Positions 9,613 through 61,700 of a stretch of DNA of 64,000 bases are shown piece after piece (the stretch's first letter is position 1; every line of letters starts with the position of its first letter). The notes beneath the pieces were generated by a model that was not told the origin of the DNA, ran no database searches, and saw only the letters and a program-made list of their open reading frames with translations. Made by a program: the position numbers and the translations under genes. The DNA comes from Podarcis erhardii. Taxonomy: Eukaryota. Location of the stretch: NCBI GenBank assembly GCA_964252035.1, contig OZ176200.1; one strand, given 5' to 3'.

Positions 9613-12476
9613 TTAATACTAATGCTAATGCTAATAATAATCTTGGCACCCTGAAAGCACAACCTAAAGTATACTGCAATAGAACCTGCAACATCTGTTC
9701 TTAGAATGGGACAACTACTTATGGCAACTGTGTTAATCTTGAATGAAATAATACTATCTGAATGTGTGAAGCTTGACTGCTCTGTGAAAAAGGTGAATTC
9801 CATGAGTTATTGGATGTATTTATTCAGTTATTAGGAAATAGGTTGAAAATAAAACTATACAAGTGGAGGGAGTGTTGTTGCACTGAGGCCCTGTTTGAGA
9901 GCACCCTATGTATAGGCATTTGGTTGGCCACTTGGCCTGATTCAACAGGGTTGATCTTAGGTTGTGAAATTACGACACTTCCCAGTGACGTGATTTCAGT
10001 GCTTTGACATGAAATGCATGTGACATTTGAAAGCAGCCCTAGGCCTTGTTCACACATTATCACCTGAGGGAGCAAGCCGCAGACATCTGCCCTATTCCAA
10101 TACAACTCCATTTTGGGGTGAGGTGGAGATAATGGTATAACATACACACCAGAAAAACCTGTGATGAAACACATGGAATAAATATATTTTCTGGTTTAAG
10201 TTCTTTCCTCAATAGTCCCATCTTCTGTGCAAATTACTACTACTAGTAGTAGTACCACTGCTCGTCCTTCACCAGCAGGTCCTAGGCAGGGTTACAGCAA
10301 TCTAAAATTCAGTTAAAACAGATAACAGTCACAGGAATAAAGTGGTAATGGGTTATTGTTCTCCAAAACATTTCCTTCTAAAATTATTTGCCTACCCTGT
10401 CTACATTATGCCCCTGTCTTTGCACATAAATAACATTTTTCACAAAAGGTCTGCTGTTTGCTGACAACCACATAACCTGATGGAAAGCTAATAATGCCCA
10501 AGGAGGTTTCATTTGATGAATTCTGTTAGTATCACACATTTTTAGTTTTTTCTTAAATATCTGGGTCATTTCACTGCTCTTGTATGTCTTTCTATGAGAT
10601 GTTTCAAATAATTAAAATATTAGGCTAAATGATTTATTTCCCAATAAACAATGTCTTACAATATTTAGAAAAGCCCTGCCTCCCCCCCCCTTTTTTTGGT
10701 AAAGTATCATTAAGTTTCATTCTCTCTTCTTTTGTTTTTGAAATGTTAACTTATTAGTAACAAAAACAATGATATCAGACATTTACTGCTTTTCCTTCCT
10801 GTAGTCTATATATATACAGGTGCCAGTAACACAAGTTTGAAATAAGTCTCCTAATTCTAAGCTGTACAGTTAATAGAGTTATATGGGGAGTGGTAAGAGA
10901 GCAGAGACATTGATATAATAAATGTTTACTGAAACTTTATTCAGCATATACCAGGGGAGATTGTTCTGATTTCTAGGGCATTTAAGGACTTGCTTGTTCT
11001 TGTAAAACAGGAGACAGAATGAAAACAACAACCAGAATGCTAAGAAGACAGATACTTCTGAAGACAGGGGATGCATTTTAGAGTTCTGCCTTGCTAAAAG
11101 GTGTAGCAGTACTTTTTTGATTAAGTGTGCAAACATGCAAGTTGGTGCCCAGATTTCTGTAACAGCAGACGTTCTTGATAAAGGGTGGGGAAGATTGATA
11201 CAATTCCCTTATTCACATGGACTGAGGAAAGACTGTTTCAAACTGAATGGAAGCAGTCTAAACCTGCACTTAATACTTCCTTGACTGGGTGTATTCCCTT
11301 GGGAGTGACCTTCATGCAGTTCTTTTAGTGTTCATGAACTCGTAGCTTTGAACCTTCAAGTTCCTCTTGTCCTTTCAAACTCCCCAGTCAGTATTCCATC
11401 TTTTTCATTCATTTTCTGGAGTCCCTATCTTAGAACTCAAAAGCCTATTTAGCATTCACATATCACTCCATATATTTTCTCTCAGTAATCCTTTCAACAA
11501 CCCGGTAAAGTAACTTCGTATTAGAATTGTCAGGTTTGTGAAACTCAACTTTGTGTGTTGTGGCTGAAGCAAGGTTTGAACCTAGTACATAGCTCAGACT
11601 CTCGTTATCTTGGTAAAGAATTTGACTGGGCAAAGCCAACACATGAGTACACATATACTTGTAGTACTCATGATGAGCATCAGATACTTCGGGAATTGCA
11701 TGCCCCAAAGTTCCTTGCTGATCTAATCATAACCAGAAAATCAGTTTAGTTTCTGAACTGGAAATGGACTTCACTGGGAGCATGACACTCCATCTGTTAT
11801 GCAGCCAAGCATCGGCAGCGAGGAAATAATATTGTGAGCCAGGTAAATATGAACTAAATATCAGCCACTATGTGTCCCCAGCTTTCCTGCTCAAAAAAGC
11901 CAGGAGCTCATGCCTGGGAGAGCACAAACAAACAACAGTCAGATTTTGGACCCATTTGGGTCCCTATAAACACTTTCTCATGCATATGACCTGATTAAAG
12001 CTATGTGACACTTCCAGATTGAATAGCTAACCAGCCATTATTTGCGAATGACATCCCTTACCTCCCTTATCTTGTCCCTCTTCTGGAATGTATGAACTGC
12101 TTGAGAGAGGGGCAGGGTTGTATCTGATTTGGGTCAGATATGAAGAAGATAAAAAAATGTAGGAGTCTCTCCTGCTGCTTGGGAGATGATTGGCATCCTG
12201 CTGTCTTGGGAGATAACGGAGGAATGCACCTTTGAGGGTGAGGTCAAGTTGTTGGAAAGTTGCAGTGCTTGCTGTGGCTGCAGAGACCAATGTGGGTGAG
12301 ACATGTTTTATTACAGCTGGGGCATTTGAAAGCACCCAATTGTGCTGCTGCAGATAGCATTTCTACTCTCTGTGCTCCTCCTAGCGGTCATTTCTCCTCT
12401 CAAAAGCACAGGGATTTCTCCATCTCCAGCACAGGGATGGGTGTGGTGTCAGGTGCCCTGCTCACCATAGAGCTGT

Positions 12477-14493
12477 GGCATAAAAATCGGCGTGCAAGAA
12501 CACAAATTGAAAACATATGCAGATGACCTTATGTTGTCATTGGAAGAACCAAAGGAGAGCATCGGCAAAGTTATAAAATTACTGGAAGAATTTGGAAAAC
12601 TATCGGGATTTAAATTGAACAGGGAAAAAACTAAAATAATGACTAAAAATATGAAAGAAGCTACCAAAAATGAGCTTGAGAGACAAACTGGAATTAAAAT
12701 AACTAAAAAAGTAAAATACCTTGGAATTTGGATAACTATGAAAAATATAAATTTGATGGAAAATAATTATAAGAAAACATGGAAAGAAATAATGAAGGAC
12801 TTGGATACATGGAACAGATTACATCTCTCGTGGATGGGTAGAATGGCGGCGATTAAAATGAGTTTATTACCCAAATTACTCTTCTTATTCCAGAATATTC
12901 CAATAATTAGGGGAATTGCAATATTTAAAGAATGGCAGAGATTACTTTCTAAAATTATTTGGCGGGGAAAAAGACCCAGAATCAAATTTAAATTGCTTAC
13001 AGATCAAAGAGATGGGGGGGGGGGTCTTGCGGTTCCAAATCTGAGGTTATATTATGAGGTCGCATGCCTTTGTTGGGTAAAAGATTGGATCGTCATCAAA
13101 AATAAAGAGATGTTAGACCTAGAGGGGTTTAACTTTAAGATTTGGTTGGCACGCCTATCTATGGCGAGACAAGGGAAGGGTCCATAAAGGTTTTTCTAAT
13201 CATATCTTCAGAGGGCCACTACTGGAAGTCTGGGAAAGGAATAAAAAATTGCTGGAGCAGAAAACGCCCTGGTGGCTATCACCAATTGATATTTTAACAA
13301 TTAAAAAATCAAACATTGAGGGGGAACGATGGACATATGAGGACCTACTAACTAAAACAGAATCCGGGTGGAGGATTAGACCATATGAAGAAATAAAAAA
13401 TAAGTTGACTGGTTGGATTCAATATCATCAAATAAATTCAATGTGGACGGAAGACAAAAAGATTGGAATAAATAAGAAAAAATCTAGATTCCAGATTGAA
13501 ATAATAGAAAGTAAAACAAAATTACTATCAAAAATGTATAACCAGTTGCTTGAGTGGGACACCAAGGACGAGGAAGTAAAGGAGGTGATGGTGAAGTGGG
13601 CGGTAGATCTAGGGTACAATATAGAGTTTGATAAATGGAAGGCTTTATGGTGTAAAGATATGAATTATTCAGCATGCACGACACTCAAGGAAAATATGTA
13701 CAAGATGATGTACAGATGGTACATAACGCCGATAAAATTGCATAAAATTTATAGAACAGGCGATAAATTGTGTTGGAAATGTAAGAACAAGGAGGGCGAA
13801 TTCTTCCACATGTGGTGGACGTGCGAGATTCTCAAGAAATTCTGGGAATCTATTTATAATGAATTAAAAAAAATTCTTAAATATACGTTCATCAAAAAAC
13901 CTGAAGCCTTCCTGCTGGGGATAATTGGGAAGTATATTAAAGAAGAAGATAGGACCTTTCTTCAATATGCAACAGCGGCCGCTAGAACCCTCATAGCACA
14001 GTACTGGAAAACACCAAAAATCCCAACATTAAAGGAGTGGCAATTTAAATTATTAGACTACTTAGAATTGGCAAAATTGACACAGAAAATAAGAAATCAA
14101 AAACGTACAAAATTTAGTAACGAATGGGATAAATTTAGAACATACATGGAAATAGAGACAAGGGGAAAATCAAAATGTTAATCAGAAATATATAGGTATC
14201 AAAAAAAAAAATCACAGTAGGCATGAGATAACGCTTACTACGTTATAAATTTCATTTTGGAATAGATATAGCAGATAGATAACTAAGATAACATTATCCG
14301 AAATCGAGATAAAGGGAAGTCGATCAATGTTGTTGTAAAATTAATGTTAAGTTGTGTTGTTTATGTTGTATGTATTGTATGTTTTTCTCTTTCTTTTTTC
14401 TTTTTTATGTTTGTTTTATTTATTTTTGTCTTTTGTATGTCTGTGAAATATATTTATGCAAAACTTAATAATTTTTTTTTTTTTTAAAAAAAA
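12477..14493 (+). mobile_element. 5'-truncated L1-clade LINE (ORF2 RT C-terminal half, 3' UTR, poly(A))
   Basis: Begins at GIKIG-VQEHKLKTYADD (RT catalytic motif), continues KYLGIWIT, GGLAVPNLRLYY, and a C-terminal CWKC...HMWWTC zinc-knuckle-like motif. Stop at 14181, then a T-rich 3' UTR and an A-run at 14486-14493. No clear TSD found. Confidence 0.92.
12492..14181 (+). pseudogene. L1 ORF2 remnant split by one frameshift near 13135-13145
   Basis: ORFs 12492-13187 and 13249-14181. The alternative frame after ...LEGFNFK reads FGWHAYLWRDKGKVHKGFSNHIFRGPLLEVWERNKKLLEQKTPWW, which joins the second ORF. Confidence 0.85.
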
Positions 14494-23714: not shown

Positions 23715-24052
23715 TAGTGCTGCCTTACATCTGGAAAATCCTGGACATGGCCAGGATTTGGCACCTGAAAATGGTGTCTAGGCGGAATTTTCAATTCCCG
23801 TTGTAAATGTCCACTTTCTCAGAGAACCATTCATTATCTCCCTCCCTCCCCAACCCTGAAGCCTTACTAAGCCGAGCCATGTTGAAAGCCAAGGCACAAG
23901 GCAGGAAGGTGTGCATGAGAGGGAGCTTTGGTCTGGCTGGAAACTTTGTGAATTCTCCTTGCACCCCTCAGTTCCCAGCCAAGCGGATCCCCTGGTCATG
24001 AGGGATCCAGCCAAGAGGGCGCCCTGTGCATGCCAGCCTGTGTGTTTGTGTG

Positions 24053-24094
<42 letters not shown>

Positions 24095-24766
24095 GTAAGA
24101 GAGAGAGGGAAAGAGTAGGAGGGAGGGACCCGAGAGACAAGCAGCCACCTCTCAGCACCTGATTGTCATGGCTGCTTGATCCAAGCCCCCCCAGAAGAAT
24201 ATCAGTAGGAGCCTGCCCCCCCTCTCTGGCTCCCTCCCCTTCCTCCCCTAGTGCACCACCTCTGCAACCCTTGTCTCCCCTCTCATCTTCCATCCAATGA
24301 TCCCTCCCCCCCACTACCCTTGTTCTGCCTTTTGAGGGGCTCCCTCCAGGAAATGCGGGTATATTTGGCCCAGGGAGACCCACCTTTCCTTCAAATGATA
24401 CGTAAAGATTTAATTCTCCCTCTCCCTCCTTCACCCACATCTCACTGGTCTCCCTGAGTTTCCCCCCGAAACAGGTTTTCCTCTTGCTGAAATTTCTGAT
24501 GCTTGCCCTCCCTTTCTCTGCTGCTGCTTTCCCTTGCCCCCACCCCAGCCTCACACCATTGCATGGCTTTTTCAGTCCTTTGTCTCCTGCCTCCTGTCTG
24601 AACACCGCCCCCAGCACCCTCTCGTCCTCCTCCAGATCCCTCTTCCATTCTCTCTCTTTCTCTCGTCCCCTCCCCAAGGGAAGGGAGAAGCAACCAGGTC
24701 TCACTTTGGAAAAGAGTGCCAGGGCTGTGGGAGCATATAAGAGCCCTTGGAAATATGGCAACCTTA
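23715..24766. mobile_element. Non-autonomous hAT-type DNA transposon, 1052 bp
   Basis: Perfect 8-bp TSD TCACAGGT at 23707-23714 and 24767-24774. Termini TAGTGCTGCCTTACATCTGGAAAATCCTGGACAT and GAAATATGGCAACCTTA are homologous to the ends of the MITE at 54085-54229. Confidence 0.8.
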
Positions 24767-25914
24767 TCACAGGTGTTCCCTTACCTTTAACATGCAGTTC
24801 CCCTGTTGTGGTGGCCAGTTGCTCTGCAGCACCCTCTGATGTCATATTTTAATAAGGCATTAATTAACATTATAACGTTGTAACCATGAGGGTAGGTCCG
24901 CCCTCAGTCTGTAAGATTCTGAACTTGTTCATGAGGTACATGTGGTTCTGCCTTGGTGGATGGAAATTCTTCTTACCCTCCACCCCGCTCTGGAAGTAGC
25001 TTTTGTTGTTATTGCTATGTTTTTTTACACCTGGTTTTGTATGGAAGTTGCATCCCCTAGATTGGATGTATGCATACAGAATTTCCCCAGTGTTCTGTCA
25101 TAAGAGAAAACAAAGGAGCCCCTGAGTGTATGGATCACTGCATAAACATTTTCATGCACTGTTTCCCCATTTCCTTCTCAAAAAATTAATTTACAGCAAA
25201 AAGTGTTTGGTATAGAAGTTGGGTAAAACATATTAGGCTCCGTCACAAAGGCATGCTTCTCTCAGACACTGCCTGTTTATGACTTCAGCATGAATCAAAT
25301 CAGTTTTGTTTTCCTTGTGATAATTAAGAGTCACCCTACAACAGTTAAAAGTGATAGCGTGGAGGTCTAAATTCTGTGACATCAAAATATTTCTTTTAAC
25401 TTATCAACAGTGTAATGATTAAGTGTCAATCAACCTTGTTGAAGCCTTATGCATTAAGGATGGACAAATCACTGTATTTCACTTTTGCCTTTTTTTACCC
25501 ATAAAACTATTCTATTCTGTTTCTACTTCATTCCGCAATTGGTTTGAGAAATGTGGATTTTAAAAGACATATTTCTCAAAATACACATTTTTGGACACAT
25601 ATTGAAACATTTTTGAGTCAAGAACTGCCTTGGAACACAGGAAGTACAAAAGCTAGTAATTAACTCAGCTGTAGTCCAGACATTTAGTCTGGCTGGTACA
25701 GATCAAGCCAGTTTATACCAGAATTTAGAAAAACTTCTAAGTTCAAGCATCCCAGAAGCAAATTGATAGATAGATAGATAGATAGACAGACTTCTTATTT
25801 AGGCTGCTCAGCAGCAAGTGGATTTATGGTATATTTTCCCAAGAATTGGTGTGAATGCTGTTGGTGTACTATTGAACCAGGAAAATGTGGTGAAGGAGAG
25901 AAAATGCTGTTACT

Positions 25915-26769
25915 CATAGAATCATAGAATCATAGAGTTGGAAGAGACCACAAGGGCCATCGAGTCCAACCCCCTGCCAAGCAGGAAACACCATCAGAGC
26001 ACTCCTGACATATGGTTGTCAAGCCTCTGCTTAAAGACCTCCAAAGAAGGAGACTCCACCACACTCCTTGGCAGCAAATTCCACTGTCGAACAGCTCTTA
26101 CTGTCAGGAAGTTCTTCCTAATGTTTAGGTGGAATCTTCTTTCTTGTAGTTTGGAGCCATTGCTCCGTGTCCGCTTCTCTGGAGCAGCAGAAAACAACCT
26201 TTCTCCCTCCTCTATGTGACATCCTTTTATATATTTGAACATGGCTATCATATCACCCCTTAACCTCCTCTTCTCCAGGCTAAACATGCCCAGCTCCCTT
26301 AGCCGTTCCTCATAAGGCATCGTTTCCAGGCCTTTGACCATTTTGGCTGCCCTCCTCTGGACACGTTCCAGTTTGTCAGTGTCCTTCTTGAACTGTGGTG
26401 CCCAGAACTGGACACAGTACTCCAGGTGAGGTCTGACCAGAGCAGAATACAGTGGCACTATTACTTCCCTTGATCTAGATGCTATACTCCTATTGATGCA
26501 GCCCAGAATTGCATTGGCTTTTTTAGCTGCCGCGTCACCCTGTTGGCTCATGTCAAGTTTGTGGTCAACCAAGACTCCTAGATCCTTTTCACATGTACTG
26601 CTCTCAAGCCAGGTGTCACCCATCTTGTATTTGTGCCTCTCATTTTTTTTGCCCAAGTGCAATACTTTACATTTCTCCCTGTTAAAATTCATCTTGTTTG
26701 TTTTGGCCCAGTTCTCTAATCTGTCAAGGTCGTTTTGAAGTGTGATCCTGTCCTCTGGGGTGTTAGCCA
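25915..26769 (-). mobile_element. Young 5'-truncated CR1 LINE
   Basis: Uninterrupted ORF2 C-terminal frame (LQNDLDRLENWAKTNKMNFNREKC...[20 protein letters not shown]...) followed by the (ATTCTATG)n CR1 tail. Confidence 0.95.
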
Positions 26770-26857
26770 GTGTTCTGATACACAATAACATACCACTACC
26801 AGTGTTCTGATACACAATATCATAATACCAGTGTTCTGATACACAATAACATAATTT
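26769..26857. repeat. Three tandem copies of a ~30-bp unit at the CR1 5' junction
   Basis: CAGTGTTCTGATACACAATA occurs three times with short variable spacers. Confidence 0.85.
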
Positions 26858-28252
26858 GGTTGTAAAAAAAAAAAGCGTTGAGTCAAATAAAATAGCTTCG
26901 TTATTTTCATTAAGAAAACATAGACAGGAAACTGTATTTCCTGAGATAAGAGCATGCCTTTCAGGTCATTAACTCTTGAAAGAAAGGAGGCCTGGATACT
27001 CCCTATAAAGATTTATCTCTGTGATTTCAGGGCATTCAGATGTCTTAAGCCTGAGTTTTAATCCCTTGCAGCTACCTGGCATGGTGTCACCCTTGCATGT
27101 TACTTCTAAATCTTTATTGCTTTCTACAGTTATGGTGCCATTCCCGCTGGAATCAAGCTTACTCGCCACATTCATTCCGACATTCTTTCACACTTCATAA
27201 GCCTCCATACCATCATTAATTAGGAGATATTTCCTCCTGAAAGTCCCCTGTATCTCCCTGATGGTGCATGAAGAGATATATCTGCTCCACACCAAATTGC
27301 TATATGTCTCCCATTGGTCATTATCATTTTAGGACAAGCAAATTGGTTCTAATGTCTGTGGCCATGGAAGGAGGAGCGTAGCTTCCCATACAGGAAATGT
27401 GTCTGTAACTTAAAAGCAAGAGGTGCCTAAGAACTTCTGAGTGAATATGCTTAAATGACAGTATTTTGGATTCTTCTCTAAGCCACCTCATACATACATA
27501 CATACATACATACATACATACTTTTATTTGTATACCGCCTTCCCACAGTTCAAACTGTGCTCCCAGCAGCTAATAACATGGGGGGGGTGTTACATAACTA
27601 CAACATAACAAAAGTAGTCATAAACAAGAAATAAAATACACAAGCAAATGGAAATTTCCATGTGAATCACAACAAATTCTAAAACAAAGATACAAAATAA
27701 AAGAAAGATATGAAAGCCAACAGCAACAAACACCCCCAAACACCCCAGCAATAAGTAAATCCAGTTTTATAGAAAAAGATTGCTGTATCTGATATATTTA
27801 TTTGAAACACATAAGTGAGATATGTATGTATGTGTATGGATGGTACATGTATCCCTATGTGAAATATATACAGTATGTGATTAAAAGATCAGGTTCTTAC
27901 AGGGAAGGTGAAAGAAATAATACATTTGTTTGTAAAGCTCTTCCTGCCCCTTTCTTTGTTAATAAATAAGAGTTTATGTTGGAGATGATTAAAACTTTTC
28001 TTTTTGCAGATGGTCTCGAGGCTTTATGCATAGGTTAAGGGCCATGTAAAAATCTCAGCCTTCATTTTTGAAACCTCGGAGACATTTGTCTGTGTTATGT
28101 GTTTTCAGCCCCTTAGGGAGATTCTCTTCCATTTCTTTTTCTTTCTGCAGACATGATGGGACATTTTTCTATGTATATCTGAGTGTTATTGCTCAGAACC
28201 GTATCCATTCCATCTACCTTCAACTTCACCTGAAGGGCAAAAAATCCCTAAG

Positions 28253-29921: not shown

Positions 29922-30696
29922 TGTGTGTTGGGGTCCTCAAGCCACCCCAATAACTCACACATCACACATAATTTTTGTTTAAGGTTTTTGGCATAATTTT
30001 GGCCACAACTTTATTTAAATACATAACTGTGAGTTGTTGCTTAGGCATTGGTTCCGACTATCTGTCCCCCCATCCAGGGACAGAACTGACTTCCGGATTC
30101 CAGCGGAAGCCAGTCAGGGAAAACAATATTGGGGAGAAATGAAGCTGGGCACCAGACCCTCACCTCTCCCCGCATGCTCCCAGAGGCTTGCATGGCCCAA
30201 GCCCGATGCCAGGGACTTGGACAAAAGCTTGGCAAGCCCCTGGATTCCTTTAACGGAATTCCCTTGCAACATCAGCATTGGAGGGGCAGGCACTTACCCC
30301 TCCACCAACCAATTTTTAAACCAATGCCTACCCACAAACCTTACAAGTTGTGATGATTTGCTACGCAGTAGGCAAAAACCAAATGGCTCCAGCCAATCAT
30401 CCAAATGGACAAAATTCCTACCAGGCCCCTGCCCCAAAAGCAGGCGACCCCATGAAAGGCATAGCAAGGTCAAGAGCAAAATCCCCAGTTCCGGGAGGGT
30501 GGGTGGGTGATCTAGCGCACGCAGCAAAAGAGAAAGCCCAAAGCTGTGTGCCCAATATTTAAAACCTTTGAGCCCAACCCACAAATTGGTAACATCGAAA
30601 TCTCCCCAGAAACACAAGTAGCCAATCACAGCCTGTGGCCATCCAAACAGATCTGCCCAGCAACAGTGGGGTGGCCTGCTAGACCCCACCGCAACA
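29922..30696 (-). mobile_element. Probable solo LTR (Gypsy/ERV-like)
   Basis: TG...CA termini with imperfect ~25-bp inverted ends (TGTGTGTTGGGGTCCTCAAGCCACCCC and GGGGTGGCCTGCTAGACCCCACCGCAACA), a GC-richer interior, and AATAAAGTTGTGGCC near the minus-strand 3' end. No clean TSD. Confidence 0.6.
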
Positions 30697-54697: not shown

Positions 54698-55776
54698 AAC
54701 ACAACTCTTAATTATTATATATACATATATGCAAGATACACTCTGCATTTCTTCAAGATCAGACATAGGCTTGACAGGTGATATATTTGGCTCTGCCTAT
54801 CCACTTTCTAGCCTTTAGAAGGCTACAGATGTTTAAGTGTCATATTGACTGATGGCTACCTTAGGGTGACGGGCAATGTGGCAAAGATGTGCACACACTT
54901 TCCAGAGTGTTAGCCTAGACAAACATCTCAGCCTACTTGCAGCTTCTGTGATACGTCAGCATAAGTTGGTTTTAAAAAGAGTGGGAAAATATTATATCAC
55001 ATAAGTAGGTCAACCGTCAAATACATGATTTTTATGTTTGCTCATTTGGGACTTCTCAAATATGATTTTCGCTTAGCTCTTGGTAGTTAAGAAATTTTCT
55101 GCTGAGCTGTTTACATTTAAGAAAAAGAGTGAGCGTAAAGTCCTAATGACATTATTAGTTTCAAACCAAAGAGCAAAATGCTTCAAACCAGGTGGCTTTG
55201 ATTTAAATTCCTTTACACTAAGGGTAGCCAATGTGATACCCTCAAGATATTGTAGAACTTCAACTCCCATCATTCATGAAATTTTGTAATGTTGTTTGGG
55301 CCTAATGAGAGTTGTCTAAACACCTTTGAGTACAAGCCACCAATCATGTGGAGAAAAGCAAATGTGAACTAAGCTCCGAAGCAGACTGCAAATGGAATCT
55401 CCTTCTGGCACAGATAGGTGTAGCTCAAATGGGCCAGAGATAGGAATGTGGTCTCAGATGGACTAGACGTCAGTCATATACCAAGGTGAGGTGTGAGAGT
55501 TTTTGTTGCTACTGGGTACAGCAATCTGCTCCCATGGAGGAGCTAAGCATGGAACATGTTTTGCTTGCAGGGGATCCCAGGTCCAATCCTTGGCATCTCC
55601 AAATAGAGTTGGGAAAGACTCTTGCATGAAACCCTGAAGAGTTACTTCCAGTCAATGTTTATATTATTGAACTAGATGGATCAGTTGACCTGGCAACTTC
55701 CTGTGTTCCTATATAGTATAAGCCAGGTCCCTGTTTTGTTCCTTAGCTCACCTATCCTTAAGCTGAGATGATGGAC

Positions 55777-55985
55777 CATAAGACACAAGGAAAGCCCCAC
55801 TGGAAGAGGACAAAGGCCCATCTACTCCAGCATCCTTTCACCAACCAGATGCCTATAGGAAGCCTGCAAGCAGGACCTGAGTGCAATCGTCCTCTCCCCT
55901 CTTGTGATTCCCCTAAGGATTAGACAAGTTAATGAAGGATAAGAGTATCAATGATCACCAGCCATAATAGCTATGTTCTACATTG
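55777..55985 (-). mobile_element. Old CR1 3' fragment
   Basis: GGCCCATCTACTCCAGCATCC...CCAACCAGATGCCTATAGGAAGCC, same family as 17813-18170. Confidence 0.6.
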
Positions 55986-55999
55986 CTGTTGTTGTTCTT

Positions 56000-56510
56000 G
56001 TTGACATTTTATTCTGCCTTTCATTCAAAGATCATAGGGTGGTTTACAATCTAAAAACACAAAAATACATACCATAATAACACACACACACACACATAAA
56101 CACAAACAGTTTAAAAGGCCATAGATAGTTTAATTAGCCAAAGGTCCGGGAGAAGAGGAATGTTTTCGTTTGGCCCCTAAATATATGTAATGAAGGTGCC
56201 AGGTGAGTCTCTCTGGGGAGAGCATTCCACAAGAAGCTACCACAGAAAAAGCCTGTTCTCATGTTGCCACCCTCCAGACTTCTCACAGAGGAGGCACACT
56301 AAGAAGGGCCACAGATGATTATTGCAGGGTCACAGCTGATTAATATCTGGAGAGGCAGTCTGTAAGGTATTGCAGTCCTGAGCTATCTAAGGCTATATAG
56401 GTCAAAACCAGTACTTTGCATTGGGTCTGGAAATTAAATTGCAGCCAATGCAGTTAGGGCAGGATTGGTGTTATATGTTCATATCGTCTTGCCCTGATGA
56501 GCAACCTGGT
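56000..56510 (-). mobile_element. L2-clade LINE 3' fragment
   Basis: Reverse complement resembles 9200-9610 (GCCTTCTCTGTAGTGGCT...TGTGGAATGCTCTCCCCAGAGAG...ACATTCCTCTT...GGCCTTTTAAA). Confidence 0.6.
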
Positions 56511-56801
56511 GACCTTCAGATACAGAAGGTCTCTGAATACCAGCTGCTGAGAATCACTAATGGGGAGAATGCTGTTGTACTCAGGACTTGCTTGTGACCT
56601 TCCTGTGGGAAGGGATACTAGGTTAAATGGGTCTTCTTAATGTTCTACCTTCTTTCTCTAGATTTGCTGTGCCTCCTTGTATCATCTATGCTCATACATC
56701 ATTGGCCTCTGAAACTTCGTATTATATGAACTCATATTTTTCTGGCTTCGGAAAAGATATCTGTAATACTAAATTTGGATTACTTAAAAGAGAGGAAGAA
56801 T

Positions 56802-58776
56802 ATATTTTTTTTTAATGATATTTATTAGAGTTTCAAATAATACACAAAAGCAAAAAACAACAAAACAATTTTCCAGAAAGGATAAAATAAAGAAAAAAGA
56901 AAGAAAGAAAAAGCAGAATTAAAAGACATTCAACATTTACAGTCCTTATTTTCAATAACTTTTTTCCGCAACTTCCCCTCGCCTCCCCTTCTTGTATTCC
57001 ATGTCCAAATATTTGTTCAACAAGTTCTTATCCCTAATTTTTAACCTTAATTTATTATTATATTTAATTCAATTTATATATCAAATTTTAACTTATATAC
57101 ATCAATCGTTATACTTAAAGACTTTTTCTAAGATCGACCCAATTTCCCTTCCACGAATTCCCCATTTTTATACTAATCACATAGCAAAAAAACGAAAAAA
57201 TAGAAAGAATCAGAATATATTTGTACACCCTTTGGATTCCCAAACCCCACCCTCCCTTTCCCGGTTTCGATCCCCGCACCACTGTCCATTAGTCCATCTG
57301 CTATCAGCCTGGAGACCTCACGTCTGAGGCTCTTAAATCTCTCTCAGTTCCTCTCTGCCAGTTTTTTTGATAGTCCTTTGTATTAAACACCAAATCTCGG
57401 AGGGGCTCTGTCCCGATAATGTCCATGTTCCTTCCAGCCAGACCTCCATATTTAAAGGTGGAGCTCAAATCTTGTTTCTTAATCCTTTTAAGTCCAAATG
57501 TCCCAAAAGCTCCAACTTCCACCTTAATCAGATTTATAGTCCATAGATCTTCAGATCTCCACAGAAGGAGATCTTTCCATTCCTCATTCTTCAATTCAAA
57601 CCAAATTTTCATCATCCAGTCCTTATTTTCTTTTATATCCATCTTGACAGGCCTCCGGCTCTCCTTTGCCTTCTGCAGCATTACAGCCCCTCCTTCCTGC
57701 TCCTCCTGTTCAGCATATATCTCTTTCTCCACTTCCTCAAATTTCTCAAATTTCTTTTCTTGTTCAGCTGCCTGGACTTTGTACATCAAGTCCTTATCCA
57801 ACTCAGTAGATTTATTTACTGTTGACTTCGAAGTTGTGACACTTGTAGACAAAACATGACTTTGCTCTTGCAACTTTCCCAAGAGAAAAAAAACCTCGTC
57901 CAGATCAGCTAGTATTTTTCGACTTATATCCATTCTTGTAATGTCCCTAAACCCCCTCTAGAGGGATTCTGGTTATTCAGTATTCCTTCCACTTCCAACC
58001 CAAAAAGCAAGTTAACTTGTTTCAATTCTTCTTTATTTTCAACAATTTATAACTATATTGTAACTAATGTAACCAGCAAGAACATCAGAAACAAAGTTCT
58101 CTATTTTTCCCAACTTTGACAGCTAATTTGACAGCTGTCAAAATCTTCTATGTCTCCTCCACAGGCTCCTCTCGCGGATCACTCCCGGGTCCCGGGGGGG
58201 GTGGCACTTTAGCTCTCAAAGTTAGCTCTTATCCTCCAGCACAATTACTTATACTCTCAATTCGTGCAATTAATAGCTTTATCCAATAAAAAGGAGATGT
58301 TCTCTCGACCTTAGTTATTTAGTCCTTGCTTCAAATTGTTTACAAGGCGGGGAGACGGACTTCCTCTTTGCGCCTTCCCCGATCGTGCCAAATTCAGACA
58401 GAAAAGAAAATCTTTCTTTTATAAATCCAATTTCCATATTGCTCACGGGCTTTTACTTTGGGTCCAAATATTCAAAGGAAGAAGTCAGCGCTCTCCAACC
58501 ATGGCATGCGGCTTCCCTCAGTAGGAGTAGCAGTCGACTCTCAGCACCGCGCCTCTCCCTGTCCCCCGTTCCGAAGCCGATAAAAAGGCTCCTTCTCGGG
58601 TCGGGGAGGATGCAGATGGTGCCCGCCGAGTCACCAGGTCCACAGGCTTCAGCGCCTGTGGTTTCTGAGGGTCCCCGCGTCGCCGCCGCGGCAGGACCCG
58701 TCTCCTACTGAGCCGATTCCCTCCGGAGCTCGGAGGGAATCCGCCATTAGGCGATGGCGCTAACCCGGAAGTCCTC
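56802..58776 (-). mobile_element. Complete ~2-kb non-autonomous poly(A) retroelement (HAL1-like, L1-dependent)
   Basis: 17-bp TSD TAAAAGAGAGGAAGAAT at 56785-56801 and 58777-58793. CpG-rich 5' end starting GAGGACTTCCGGGTTAGCGCCATCGCCTAATGGCGG; one 209-aa ORF; T-rich 3' end with AATAAA and an A tail. Confidence 0.88.
57304..57933 (-). CDS. Intact 209-aa ORF of the retroelement; acidic coiled-coil-like N-half, Trp-rich C-half; function unknown
   Basis: ATG-to-stop ORF (MDISRKILADLDEVFFLLGKLQEQ...AEQEKKFEKFEEVEKEIYAEQEEQE...KDWMMKIWFELKNEEWKDLLLW...). No RT or endonuclease motif seen. Confidence 0.55.
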   Translation of the reverse strand: MDISRKILADLDEVFFLLGKLQEQSHVLSTSVTTSKSTVNKSTELDKDLMYKVQAAEQEKKFEKFEEVEKEIYAEQEEQEGGAVMLQKAKESRRPVKMDIKENKDWMMKIWFELKNEEWKDLLLWRSEDLWTINLIKVEVGAFGTFGLKRIKKQDLSSTFKYGGLAGRNMDIIGTEPLRDLVFNTKDYQKNWQRGTERDLRASDVRSPG

Positions 58777-61700
58777 TAAAAGAGAGGAAGAATTAATAAG
58801 ATTCCAAATAATGAGTGACATCCAATGATGTTCACCTGATTGCACAATGTATTTTCCACCCCACCTTCCCCACTCTAGCTCCCCTCCCCATATTTCCCAC
58901 ACTCTGAAACAGATTTGGCAGATGTGCCACGGGGTGTTCAATGCGGAGGAGAGGAAGTCCTGTAACATGAATGGAAGTCTGCTTGCACAACACTGGATGT
59001 GACCCAATGACTGGTGCTGAACCATACCAAACACCCATGCAATGTAATAGCTATCTGCTTTGTCCTGAAAGCTTTGTAGAAATTCATGGCTTGTAAAATT
59101 CAACAGGATTGAGCTCAGGGTAACAGTGCTCAAATAATGAATCAGCATGAAAGCATCCTTACTATGGATCTTGGTGTGCTTTGTGCATCACAAAATTAAA
59201 ATGTAAGCAATAAAAGAAAGCATGCAGTTTTGGAACATATTCACGGTGAATTCATATATGTTAACGTAACTTATCTCAATGGAAGAAATAAAATGTCTTC
59301 CCTGATTTTGCAGATTTGGTCAGTGACACTCTCATGGACTATAGATAAACTTCATAAAAATATTGATCATGCAAAGGAAATAACCAAGTGAAACAAGAAA
59401 ATGAAGTGTGCTAAATTATAAATTGTTATGGGATCAGTCTATATGATGACATACTTTGCTTCACCAGAACATAAATAGACTCAAATGAAGCAAAGTTAAT
59501 TACGGACAAATTCCAAAAGTGTAGCTGTGCTGGCTTCATGGAATAAAAACTAATTAAGGCAAAATCTCTTGAAGAAGCAAGATAAAAATCCTCATGTTCA
59601 TCACCCCCCCCCACAAAAATAGTATAGTTTGTGGCCCAAATTTGTTCTTTGGTTGTGCTGTAAAATATTCTAAAGCACGATGAAACAAAAAAGAGTGATT
59701 AAAATTCCTCTTCCTTCTAGGATCTAAGTTATCCTTAATATACAACGTATTAACTGGTTTCCAAACAGCATGTACAAAGTTGAATGGCATATTGGAGTTT
59801 GTTCCCCTGTCCCCATACCTCTCAAATAGCTTGAAATAAAATGCTAATATGTTCTATTAAAGAGTTGAAATAAAAGAGTTTGTCCTGGCCTAAACAATAG
59901 TCATTCATAGGTTCAATAGCCAAATATTGAACTTTTCAGATAGAAAGTATGTCTTACGCTGGAGTCAGAATACTGACATTTACAAAAGAAAAAAAACTAA
60001 CAAAACAAAACAAAACCTTCTCAAGTGTTGTTTTGAAGTGAAGCCACTTCAGTGGCATTTAACAGAAAACCTGCTCAGATGGCAGAGAAGTTGCTCCAGC
60101 GGAATCTGGAGAAATGCCAACTGTACGGTATTAAACCACATTCCTATTGAGAATTTGTATTGACAATATACGGTTTTATTAATGTCTCCTCTGTGCAAGA
60201 AACAAGAAAAGATACTTATTGTAAATGTTACAAAAAATTACTGGAGCCCAGCTTACTTCAGCTTACTCCTGAATATTGTAATATAAAGCTTTGAGCTCTT
60301 CTTCATCACTTGATATAATTAATCAGGGTTCATCTCTAGTGTTGTTGTTTTTAGTGAATAACATTTCCTCCAGCACCCTCCAAAGGAGTGTGAACCTTGA
60401 TTGTGTGAAGGTGCTTTGCAACATACCTTCTGAACATTTGCTTTTGTCTTCATTCCCAGTTCCACAATTCTGCTGGACTTTTGTTCTCAATGCACCCACC
60501 GCCTTTCTTTCAAAGCAGTCCCATGGAACAGAGCACCACAGATAAAGCAGACTTGATCATTCTAAAAAACGGACAGGTAGCAGCCCTATCTTGGTCATAG
60601 GAGATAGATTTTACAAACTGAACTTTCATCTTAGGTTGAACGAGGAGTTGACCTGCAACTTGTAACCAGTCCTAAGCATGGCACCTTTGTGCACTGGGTT
60701 AAAGCAATGGAAAGTAATAGTTTTAGAATCACAAAGGATTTAATCAATTTCTTTTTTTAAAAAAATGTGACAACACTGAAGTATGCAAAATGACAGAAGA
60801 TGATTCAGAAACCTTTTTATTTATGAAATCCTGCTGTTAAAATGTCATACTTTTCGGACAGAACAATCTTCTGCAATGCAAGTGTTTTATATTTGGTTCT
60901 GTCTGCCACTCCCTCAGGTACCTTATCCTGCTGCCCAAGAGCACGGCAGGAGGAGCAGGTGGTGAATGTTGCAAATGGCAAGTAATGTATTTAAATGGAT
61001 GCTCTTAGAACAACACACTGTAAACTATCAATTAAAAAGCTAAATTGAACAAATGATACTACTCTCCTGCAATCTCAATGGCCATCATAGCTAAATTAAC
61101 TGGGGCAGCGAAGAATGGCTTCGTTGCAATAGAAGAGCCAGTTATTTTGCATGCAGTGCTCAGAGTAAGGGCAGATCATGTGATTAGTATGGCTATTTTG
61201 GAAAAACACAATGCCAGTTTAAAAGAGATAAGACTATGGAAATAACAAAAGGGTCTGGTCACTAGTAGGCTGTTCTTTGACCGTGTAATCCTTAGAAGGA
61301 TTGCCTACCACGTTCAACAGGACCTGCACATAGGTACAGGTGCATAGGCCTGCAGTCTTACAGTGCAAGCCCATGTATATTTACTTATTAAAAAGAAGAA
61401 GATCTTAGGACAAAACCAAATCCCACAAGGATTTACCTTTGCGCAATGGAGCTTCCCTTCTCTCCTCCCTTGTGTTTGCCCTGCACCCTCCCTAGTTCTG
61501 CTGCAGAAGGTAGAACACATTTAGTGAGGTTACAGGGAGAAGAGCAGAGATAAATGTTCCCTTGCACAAGCAGAAACTGTGCTGATAGAAGGTTCACATA
61601 GTGCTACTTTGGATATGACCCATTGCATTGAATGGGATGTACTTATTTCCATGTAAGCAATCCTAGGCTTTCAGCCTAAATGCAGTTGCAGTCTGTGGGG

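Follow-up and report, generated by a model that had tools for sequence, protein, structure and literature searches.

Half-L1 (HAL1) elements of mammals are non-autonomous derivatives of the retrotransposon L1 that encode only its ORF1 protein, ORF1p (PMC5753468), and a passage of the same source, citing Smit 1999 and Bao & Jurka 2010, states that they arose several times independently. The SVA and LAVA elements of hominoids are composite non-autonomous elements that are transcribed by RNA polymerase II (Pol II) and mobilised by L1 (PMC7353768). In lizards, the clade-1 L1 families (Novick et al. 2009; Boissinot & Sookdeo 2016, PMC5381506) have a common 5' extremity with the consensus GACTTCCGGTG-N8-ATGGCG, conservation across lizard L1 families being highest in the first ~120 bp; their 5' untranslated regions (UTRs) are long, with an average of 45% GC, and the sense strand of lizard L1 open reading frames (ORFs) is A-rich and C-poor (PMC5381506). 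Here we describe a retroposed element of 1,975 bp with a single ORF for 209 aa, which lies at 56802-58776 on the minus strand of a 64,000-nt stretch of the Podarcis erhardii genome (contig OZ176200.1 of assembly GCA_964252035.1; the whole stretch is called the window below). With a probability of roughly 0.75, we regard it as a young and complete copy from a half-L1-like family of lizard retroposons that is highly repeated, non-autonomous and polyadenylated and is presumably mobilised by L1, to judge from its insertion hallmarks and an L1-type 5' terminus. To our knowledge, half-L1 elements have been described only from mammals and with a normal ORF1p, and our literature search returned no description of HAL1-type elements in squamates.

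The element is bounded by a perfect 17-bp direct repeat, TAAAAGAGAGGAAGAAT, which was recognised by sequence inspection and a repeat scan; one copy of this target-site duplication adjoins the 5' end of the element (58777-58793), and the other, 100% identical to it, adjoins the A tail (56785-56801). Contigs of four public runs (organisms A, B, C and H) were placed on 55800-59780, and exact empty sites were recovered from two of them: an 879-nt contig of organism B covers 56389-56784 and continues directly with 58777-59259, while a 1,246-nt contig of organism C contains the same 56784/58777 junction. Both keep one copy of the 17-mer, and the divergence of their flanks from the window amounts to ~1.6% and ~3.2%, respectively. 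Organism A, which is probably the species of the window, holds the 5' junction, since one of its contigs, which deviates from the window at 3 of 1,043 nt, begins at 58738 inside the element and crosses to the right flank; on the other side, an organism A contig stops exactly at 56801. The empty site in B and C together with the 5' junction in A implies that the insertion took place after A had diverged from B and C. Thus the insertion is real, young and lineage-specific, in agreement with a first-pass annotation of the window, made from its letters only, that had taken the element for a complete and apparently young insertion.

Read in its own orientation, the element starts with GAGGACTTCCGGG and consists of a 5' UTR of 843 nt with 48.5% GC (57934-58776), the ATG-to-stop ORF (57304-57933; 209 codons plus the stop, with A at -3 and G at +4) and a 3' UTR of 502 nt with 30% GC (56802-57303), all on the minus strand. 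The first 300 nt of the 5' UTR (58477-58776, minus strand) hold 26 CpG at 62-68% GC, with a CpG observed/expected ratio of 0.6-1.1. At the 3' end, AATAAA (plus-strand TTTATT at 56821-56826) is followed by 7 nt, a run of nine A (A9, 56805-56813) and TAT (56802-56804). A long target duplication combined with an A tail fits L1-type target-primed reverse transcription, and these two features point to an L1 ORF2 protein (ORF2p) acting in trans as the probable agent of the insertion. Neither an endonuclease nor a reverse transcriptase was found in the 1,975 bp, as judged by a Pfam search of the ORF and by tblastx against the L1 ORF2 of the window. The first-pass annotation had read the anatomy in much the same way: its perfect 17-bp duplication, the ~840-nt 5' region that is CpG-rich at its 5' end, the single 209-aa ORF with a ~500-nt 3' UTR, the absence of a reverse transcriptase and the target-primed signature were all recovered, and of its A tail after AATAAA both parts are present, but the tail is short and not pure. 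Two other classes of element were considered and rejected. An autonomous L1 is ruled out by the missing ORF2 with its APE endonuclease and reverse transcriptase. Short interspersed elements (SINEs) have an RNA polymerase III head from tRNA, 7SL or 5S and measure a few hundred bases; a SINE is ruled out by the 2-kb length, the protein-coding content and the absence of any Rfam or tRNA match in 55700-59000.

Within the 64-kb window, no other copy of the element or of its protein was found, and the abundance of the family was assessed from the genomic contigs. In organism A, the summed contig depth, which is not a copy number, reaches ~17,000-52,000 over the 3' UTR, ~25,000-80,000 over the ORF and ~170,000-371,000 over the 5' end (bins over 58460-58858), corresponding to ~180-550x, ~260-850x and ~1,800-3,900x the depth of the unique right flank of the element (~95). 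Organisms B and C display a similar depth pattern inside the element. Depths so far above the unique flank exclude a single-copy origin, and the element belongs to an abundant multi-copy repeat family; the proposal that a family, rather than a single-copy sequence or a deletion specific to this locus, had been encountered is accordingly borne out by an interior depth of ~180-3,900x the unique flank. The part of the element most abundant in genomic contigs is its 5' end (~58460-58776), which lies several-fold above the body. This excess is the opposite of what 5'-truncated retrocopies produce. It suggests a terminal 5' module common to this and other families, and a shared, conserved L1 terminal module would in turn explain why the 5' end is more abundant.

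The same data bear on the idea that an ordinary host mRNA gave rise to the element as a processed retrocopy, the conserved ORFs being orthologues of the host gene. The target duplication, the A tail, the CpG-rich start and the single ORF would also fit the retrocopy of a short mRNA, but in three species the depth exceeds that of the unique flank by a factor of hundreds to thousands, the 5' end is commoner than the 3' end, opposite to 5'-truncated pseudogenes, the 5' terminus carries an L1 start motif, and the NCBI and UniRef sources contain no annotated protein of this kind, which occurs in raw-run assemblies only. We consider such a retrocopy very improbable. A one-off L1 with an internal deletion unique to this locus would account for the L1-type 5' terminus and the tail, yet it is at odds with the highly repeated interior, with the absence of an ORF2 remnant by tblastx and with the presence of the same short ORF in relatives at 20-94% pairwise identity, and we give it next to no credence.

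The link of the element to L1 is drawn from its 5' terminus, because element bases 4-12, GACTTCCGG (58765-58773, minus strand), match the start of the lizard clade-1 L1 5'-terminal consensus at 9/9 positions and are followed by ATGGCG, a YY1-type core known from these families (PMC5381506), at bases 30-35 (58742-58747, minus strand). Between the two, CGCCAT, an inverse copy of ATGGCG, was read from the sequence at bases 18-23 (58754-58759, minus strand). GACTTCCGG includes CCGGAAGT, which we take to be an ETS-type site, and occurs twice in the 64-kb window against an expectation of 0.05. An origin of the 5' UTR from a host L1 may be suspected from these nine bases and from ATGGCG at a shifted spacing. 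The first 120 nt of the RNA (58657-58776, minus strand) are predicted to be strongly structured (-63 kcal/mol, z = -3.96, with 0 of 200 shuffles as stable) and include the putative arms of a hairpin (58712-58725 and 58731-58744, minus strand), which are 14 nt long and 93% complementary and form 11 bp in the predicted fold. Farther along the 5' UTR, in 58116-58141, a perfect 14-bp palindrome, TTGACAGCTGTCAA (58128-58141), overlaps a direct repeat of TTTGACAGCT; it includes TGACAG motifs as well as CAGCTG, an E-box, and may have a regulatory function for the element. The second GACTTCCGG of the window, at 30088-30096 on the plus strand, continues with ATTCCAGCGGAAGCC and falls within a 158-aa ORF (30034-30510) for which Pfam gave no match. 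Around it, no similarity to the element was found beyond the motif, which may mark the 5' end of another retroelement or represent an ETS-type site.

The only L1 of the window (12471-14493, plus strand) is 5'-truncated and retains the end of the reverse transcriptase domain (RVT_1, E = 2e-9) and a 310-aa C-terminal part of ORF2; the ORFs upstream of it gave no Pfam match, and its 3' UTR ends unusually, with ~14 T followed directly by 8 A. Local alignment and tblastx revealed no DNA or protein similarity shared between this L1 and the element. In the first-pass annotation, the 3' end of the element had been likened to the 3' UTR of this L1 at 14300-14493 and mobilisation by the local L1 family had been proposed, but the parallel proved to be compositional only: the best local alignment of the 3' end to the L1 3' UTR (14182-14493) scores 30, compared with 28.8 +/- 3.6 for shuffles, and 200 of 500 composition-keeping shuffles reach this score. 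The argument for a partnership with this particular L1 is thus not supported. In base composition, the sense strand of the element's ORF resembles lizard L1 ORFs, being A-rich (35%) and C-poor (13%).

Pfam contains no domain that matches the 209-aa ORF. A word search with the ORF returned two clusters, both derived from raw-run assemblies and 47-50% identical. Among 1.84 billion protein representatives, a profile search yielded 11 relatives, all of 129-215 aa, and a second word search, made with the profile, gave 14 clusters, all of 171-215 aa, unnamed and from Logan assemblies only. No member of the family was found in annotated proteomes (NCBI and UniRef sources). Seventeen distinct full-length relatives (171-215 aa) align from Met1 to a common stop, with pairwise identities of 20-94% (median 39%), so that ORF conservation, which the first-pass annotation had named as a check, is seen among diverged relatives that keep both start and stop. 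Conservation along the protein is uneven, the mean share of the top residue being 0.67 in the first 30 residues, 0.73 in the last 34 and 0.31-0.35 in the middle; the best conserved block, codons 176-209 (57307-57408, minus strand), is basic and ends with ...GTERDLRASDVRSPG. In a neutral simulation that allowed substitutions only, only 0.25% of trials retained an open frame at 50% identity, and fewer than 1 in 2,000 did so at 30%. The rarity of open frames under neutrality, taken together with the uneven conservation and with start and stop positions that do not vary, argues that the protein is under purifying selection in the diverged members, an argument built on the open frames that the database exclusively lists rather than on a ratio of nonsynonymous to synonymous substitution rates (dN/dS).

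The present copy is not identical to the family consensus. Its codon 192 (first base 57360) encodes Trp, where the consensus and most family contigs have Arg. Seven contigs of organism A share the 5' UTR and ATG and then read MAGGGKILMEL... (57930) where this copy reads MDISRKILADL, the former being closer to the consensus. Since the N-termini diverge after a shared 5' UTR and ATG, it follows that several subfamilies coexist in one genome.

Two explanations differ in where this gene came from. According to the first, the element is a HAL1 in the strict sense, the 209-aa gene being a reduced L1 ORF1 in which the coiled coil survived while most of the RNA-recognition motif (RRM) and the C-terminal domain disappeared, and the family would go back to a lizard clade-1 L1 with an internal deletion. 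Its L1-type 5' terminus, the location of the ORF at the ORF1 position and a modelled N-terminal coiled coil are in line with this explanation. AlphaFold2 (AF2) predicts a helix over residues 2-80, with pLDDT values of 81-90 only for residues 1-30, whereas the overall confidence is low (pLDDT 40 with alignment A1 and 51 with alignment A2). In a three-copy model of residues 1-95, codons 3-60 (57754-57927, minus strand) are predicted to form a parallel, in-register coiled coil with 3-4-3-4 contact spacing; the ipSAE is 0.36 compared with 0.02 for the best control, three runs agree in 100% of the contacts of the smaller set, and the partner pLDDT is at least 69. In the calibration of this score, 21 of the 30 proteins solved as one-chain pairs attained the ipSAE mark, but none of the 23 solved as single chains did; these counts were obtained with two copies and are only roughly valid for three. 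The models thus support an N-terminal parallel coiled coil through which the protein would oligomerise. A comparison with the ESM Atlas was uninformative, as its best score of 0.84, to unnamed plant clusters, lies in a setting where recognition is under the useful range.

Sequence searches, however, speak against descent from ORF1. With E values up to 10 allowed, 12 family members gave no match to Transposase_22 or to its trimer and dsRBD models and had no Pfam family in common, PDB profile searches returned no ORF1p chain, and no ORF1p-sized relative emerged either from the profile search of 1.84 billion proteins or from a word search that accepted up to 366 aa. The AF2 model likewise contains no RRM, at a confidence so low (pLDDT 40-51) that a likeness in fold may still exist. 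The suggestion that the ORF lacks the RRM-type motifs of ORF1p was therefore upheld, as the Pfam, PDB and profile searches disclosed no recognisable ORF1p domain. Moreover, lizard clade-1 ORF1 has a well-conserved coiled coil (PMC5381506), and a recent derivative should therefore be detectable. The protein resembles ORF1p in the position of its ORF and in its predicted N-terminal coiled coil, without detectable sequence likeness. We place the descent of the gene from L1 ORF1 somewhat short of an even chance, and the strict HAL1 explanation as a whole is, in our estimate, tentative to the same degree.

According to the second explanation, the gene is not derived from L1, and a coding sequence captured from the host or arisen de novo would sit between an L1 5' UTR and tail, much as SVA and LAVA are put together from unrelated parts. 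Such a gene would have a role of its own, for example with a coiled coil that joins or disturbs L1 particles, and selection would keep the protein as an aid for the RNA to obtain L1 ORF2p. The absence of ORF1p similarity from all searches run and the absence of the family from annotated proteomes are consistent with this possibility, and so would be the best PDB profile match, in which the first 41 residues of neuroguidin align with family residues 1-41, start to start, at E = 2.6. In the alignment to human neuroguidin (PDB 7mq8, chain NC), about one-third of the residues are identical, including LQEQ. An E value of 2.6 is not significant, however, and the match appears to lie at chance level and is treated here as chance; the family has no Sas10/Utp3 match in Pfam, no donor gene was found, and a fast-evolving ORF1 remnant could escape sequence searches. 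We regard a non-L1 gene as possible but rather doubtful.

Several observations weigh against a half-L1-like, L1-mobilised family, and they are to be set beside the evidence in its favour. The A tail is short and impure, with 3 non-A bases between A9 and the duplication. Mammalian L1 endonuclease has the consensus TTTT/AA, to which the nick site of the primed strand, 5'-GAAT/TAAT, is AT-rich but bears only a loose likeness. ATGGCG sits 7 nt farther from the start of the element than in the published consensus, the 3' UTR has no real similarity to the sole L1 3' end in the window, and the protein has neither detectable ORF1p similarity nor a confident fold beyond its first helix. Furthermore, the base-by-base evidence comes from this one copy, and the abundance of the family is measured by contig depth, which does not count copies. 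Pieces from the run of organism H, which is RNA by guess, match 57041-58142 at 85-93%, but 45% of the sequence placed there continues into unlike sequence, which detracts from its use as evidence of expression.

On balance, we favour the half-L1-like family, for which a cycle of the following kind may be envisaged. The clade-1-type L1 5' end and the CpG-rich 5' UTR would presumably serve as an internal Pol II promoter, and the protein would be translated from the element's own RNA and oligomerise via its N-terminal parallel coiled coil. Its conserved basic C-terminal part might coat or mark that RNA, a role akin to that of L1 ORF1p, and thereby help the element RNA to compete for ORF2p. The resident L1 ORF2 protein would then copy the element mRNA into new sites by target-primed reverse transcription at the A tail.

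Other repeats and frames were noted in the surroundings. The left flank of the element (55800-56600) consists of very high-copy repeats with a summed depth of ~6,000-250,000, compared with ~95 in unique DNA; hundreds of contig breaks fall at 55841, 55881-55886 and 56232, and a short (CA)n run is present near 56086-56100. On the minus strand, two open frames at 23781-24848 and 25997-26965, of 356 and 323 codons from stop to stop, have no convincing Pfam match and possibly represent another mobile element or a lineage-specific gene.

The single copy at 56802-58776 is ordinary in itself, and the interest lies with its family. RNA-binding domains are thought to be essential for ORF1p, and L1 is present at low copy number in squamate genomes. 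Against this background, the lizard family seems to retain only a ~200-aa protein with a predicted coiled coil and without recognisable ORF1p RNA-binding domains. If it is still active, it would offer a natural minimal system for studying the duties of a cis-encoded protein in the copying of RNA by L1 ORF2p, and it would have implications for the part that non-autonomous elements play in shaping squamate genomes. Should the gene turn out to be other than ORF1, the family would represent a kind of L1 parasite undescribed in any vertebrate.

Among the known systems, HAL1 comes close in its general plan, as the lizard element is likewise ~2 kb long, has an L1-type 5' end and one ORF in the ORF1 position, lacks ORF2, ends with an A tail, is flanked by a target duplication and belongs to a multi-copy family that has kept its coding capacity. 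In contrast to HAL1, its host is a lizard, and its protein measures ~200 aa, compared with ~330 aa in HAL1, and is devoid of a detectable Transposase_22 RRM or C-terminal domain. HAL1 is defined by a recognisable ORF1 gene, and it is because none was recognised here that we do not file the element as a HAL1 member. With the clade-1 L1 families of lizards (Anolis), the element has in common a start with GACTTCCGG and a subsequent ATGGCG, a long 5' UTR of ~45-48% GC with CpG-rich parts, the A-rich sense strand and an AT-rich 3' UTR, whereas it differs from them in having no ORF2 or recognisable ORF1, in the length of its 5' UTR (843 nt compared with ~1.3 kb) and in a spacing of the terminal motifs that is 7 nt longer. 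Two Anolis L1 families have copy numbers of 75-144 (PMC3787681), and the apparent abundance of the present family, expressed as contig depth and not as copy number, is far above these figures. Like SVA and LAVA, finally, the element is kb-sized and polyadenylated, presumably depends on L1 ORF2p in trans and may combine L1 with non-L1 parts; but while both of those are non-coding, the lizard family keeps a protein that appears to be under selection.

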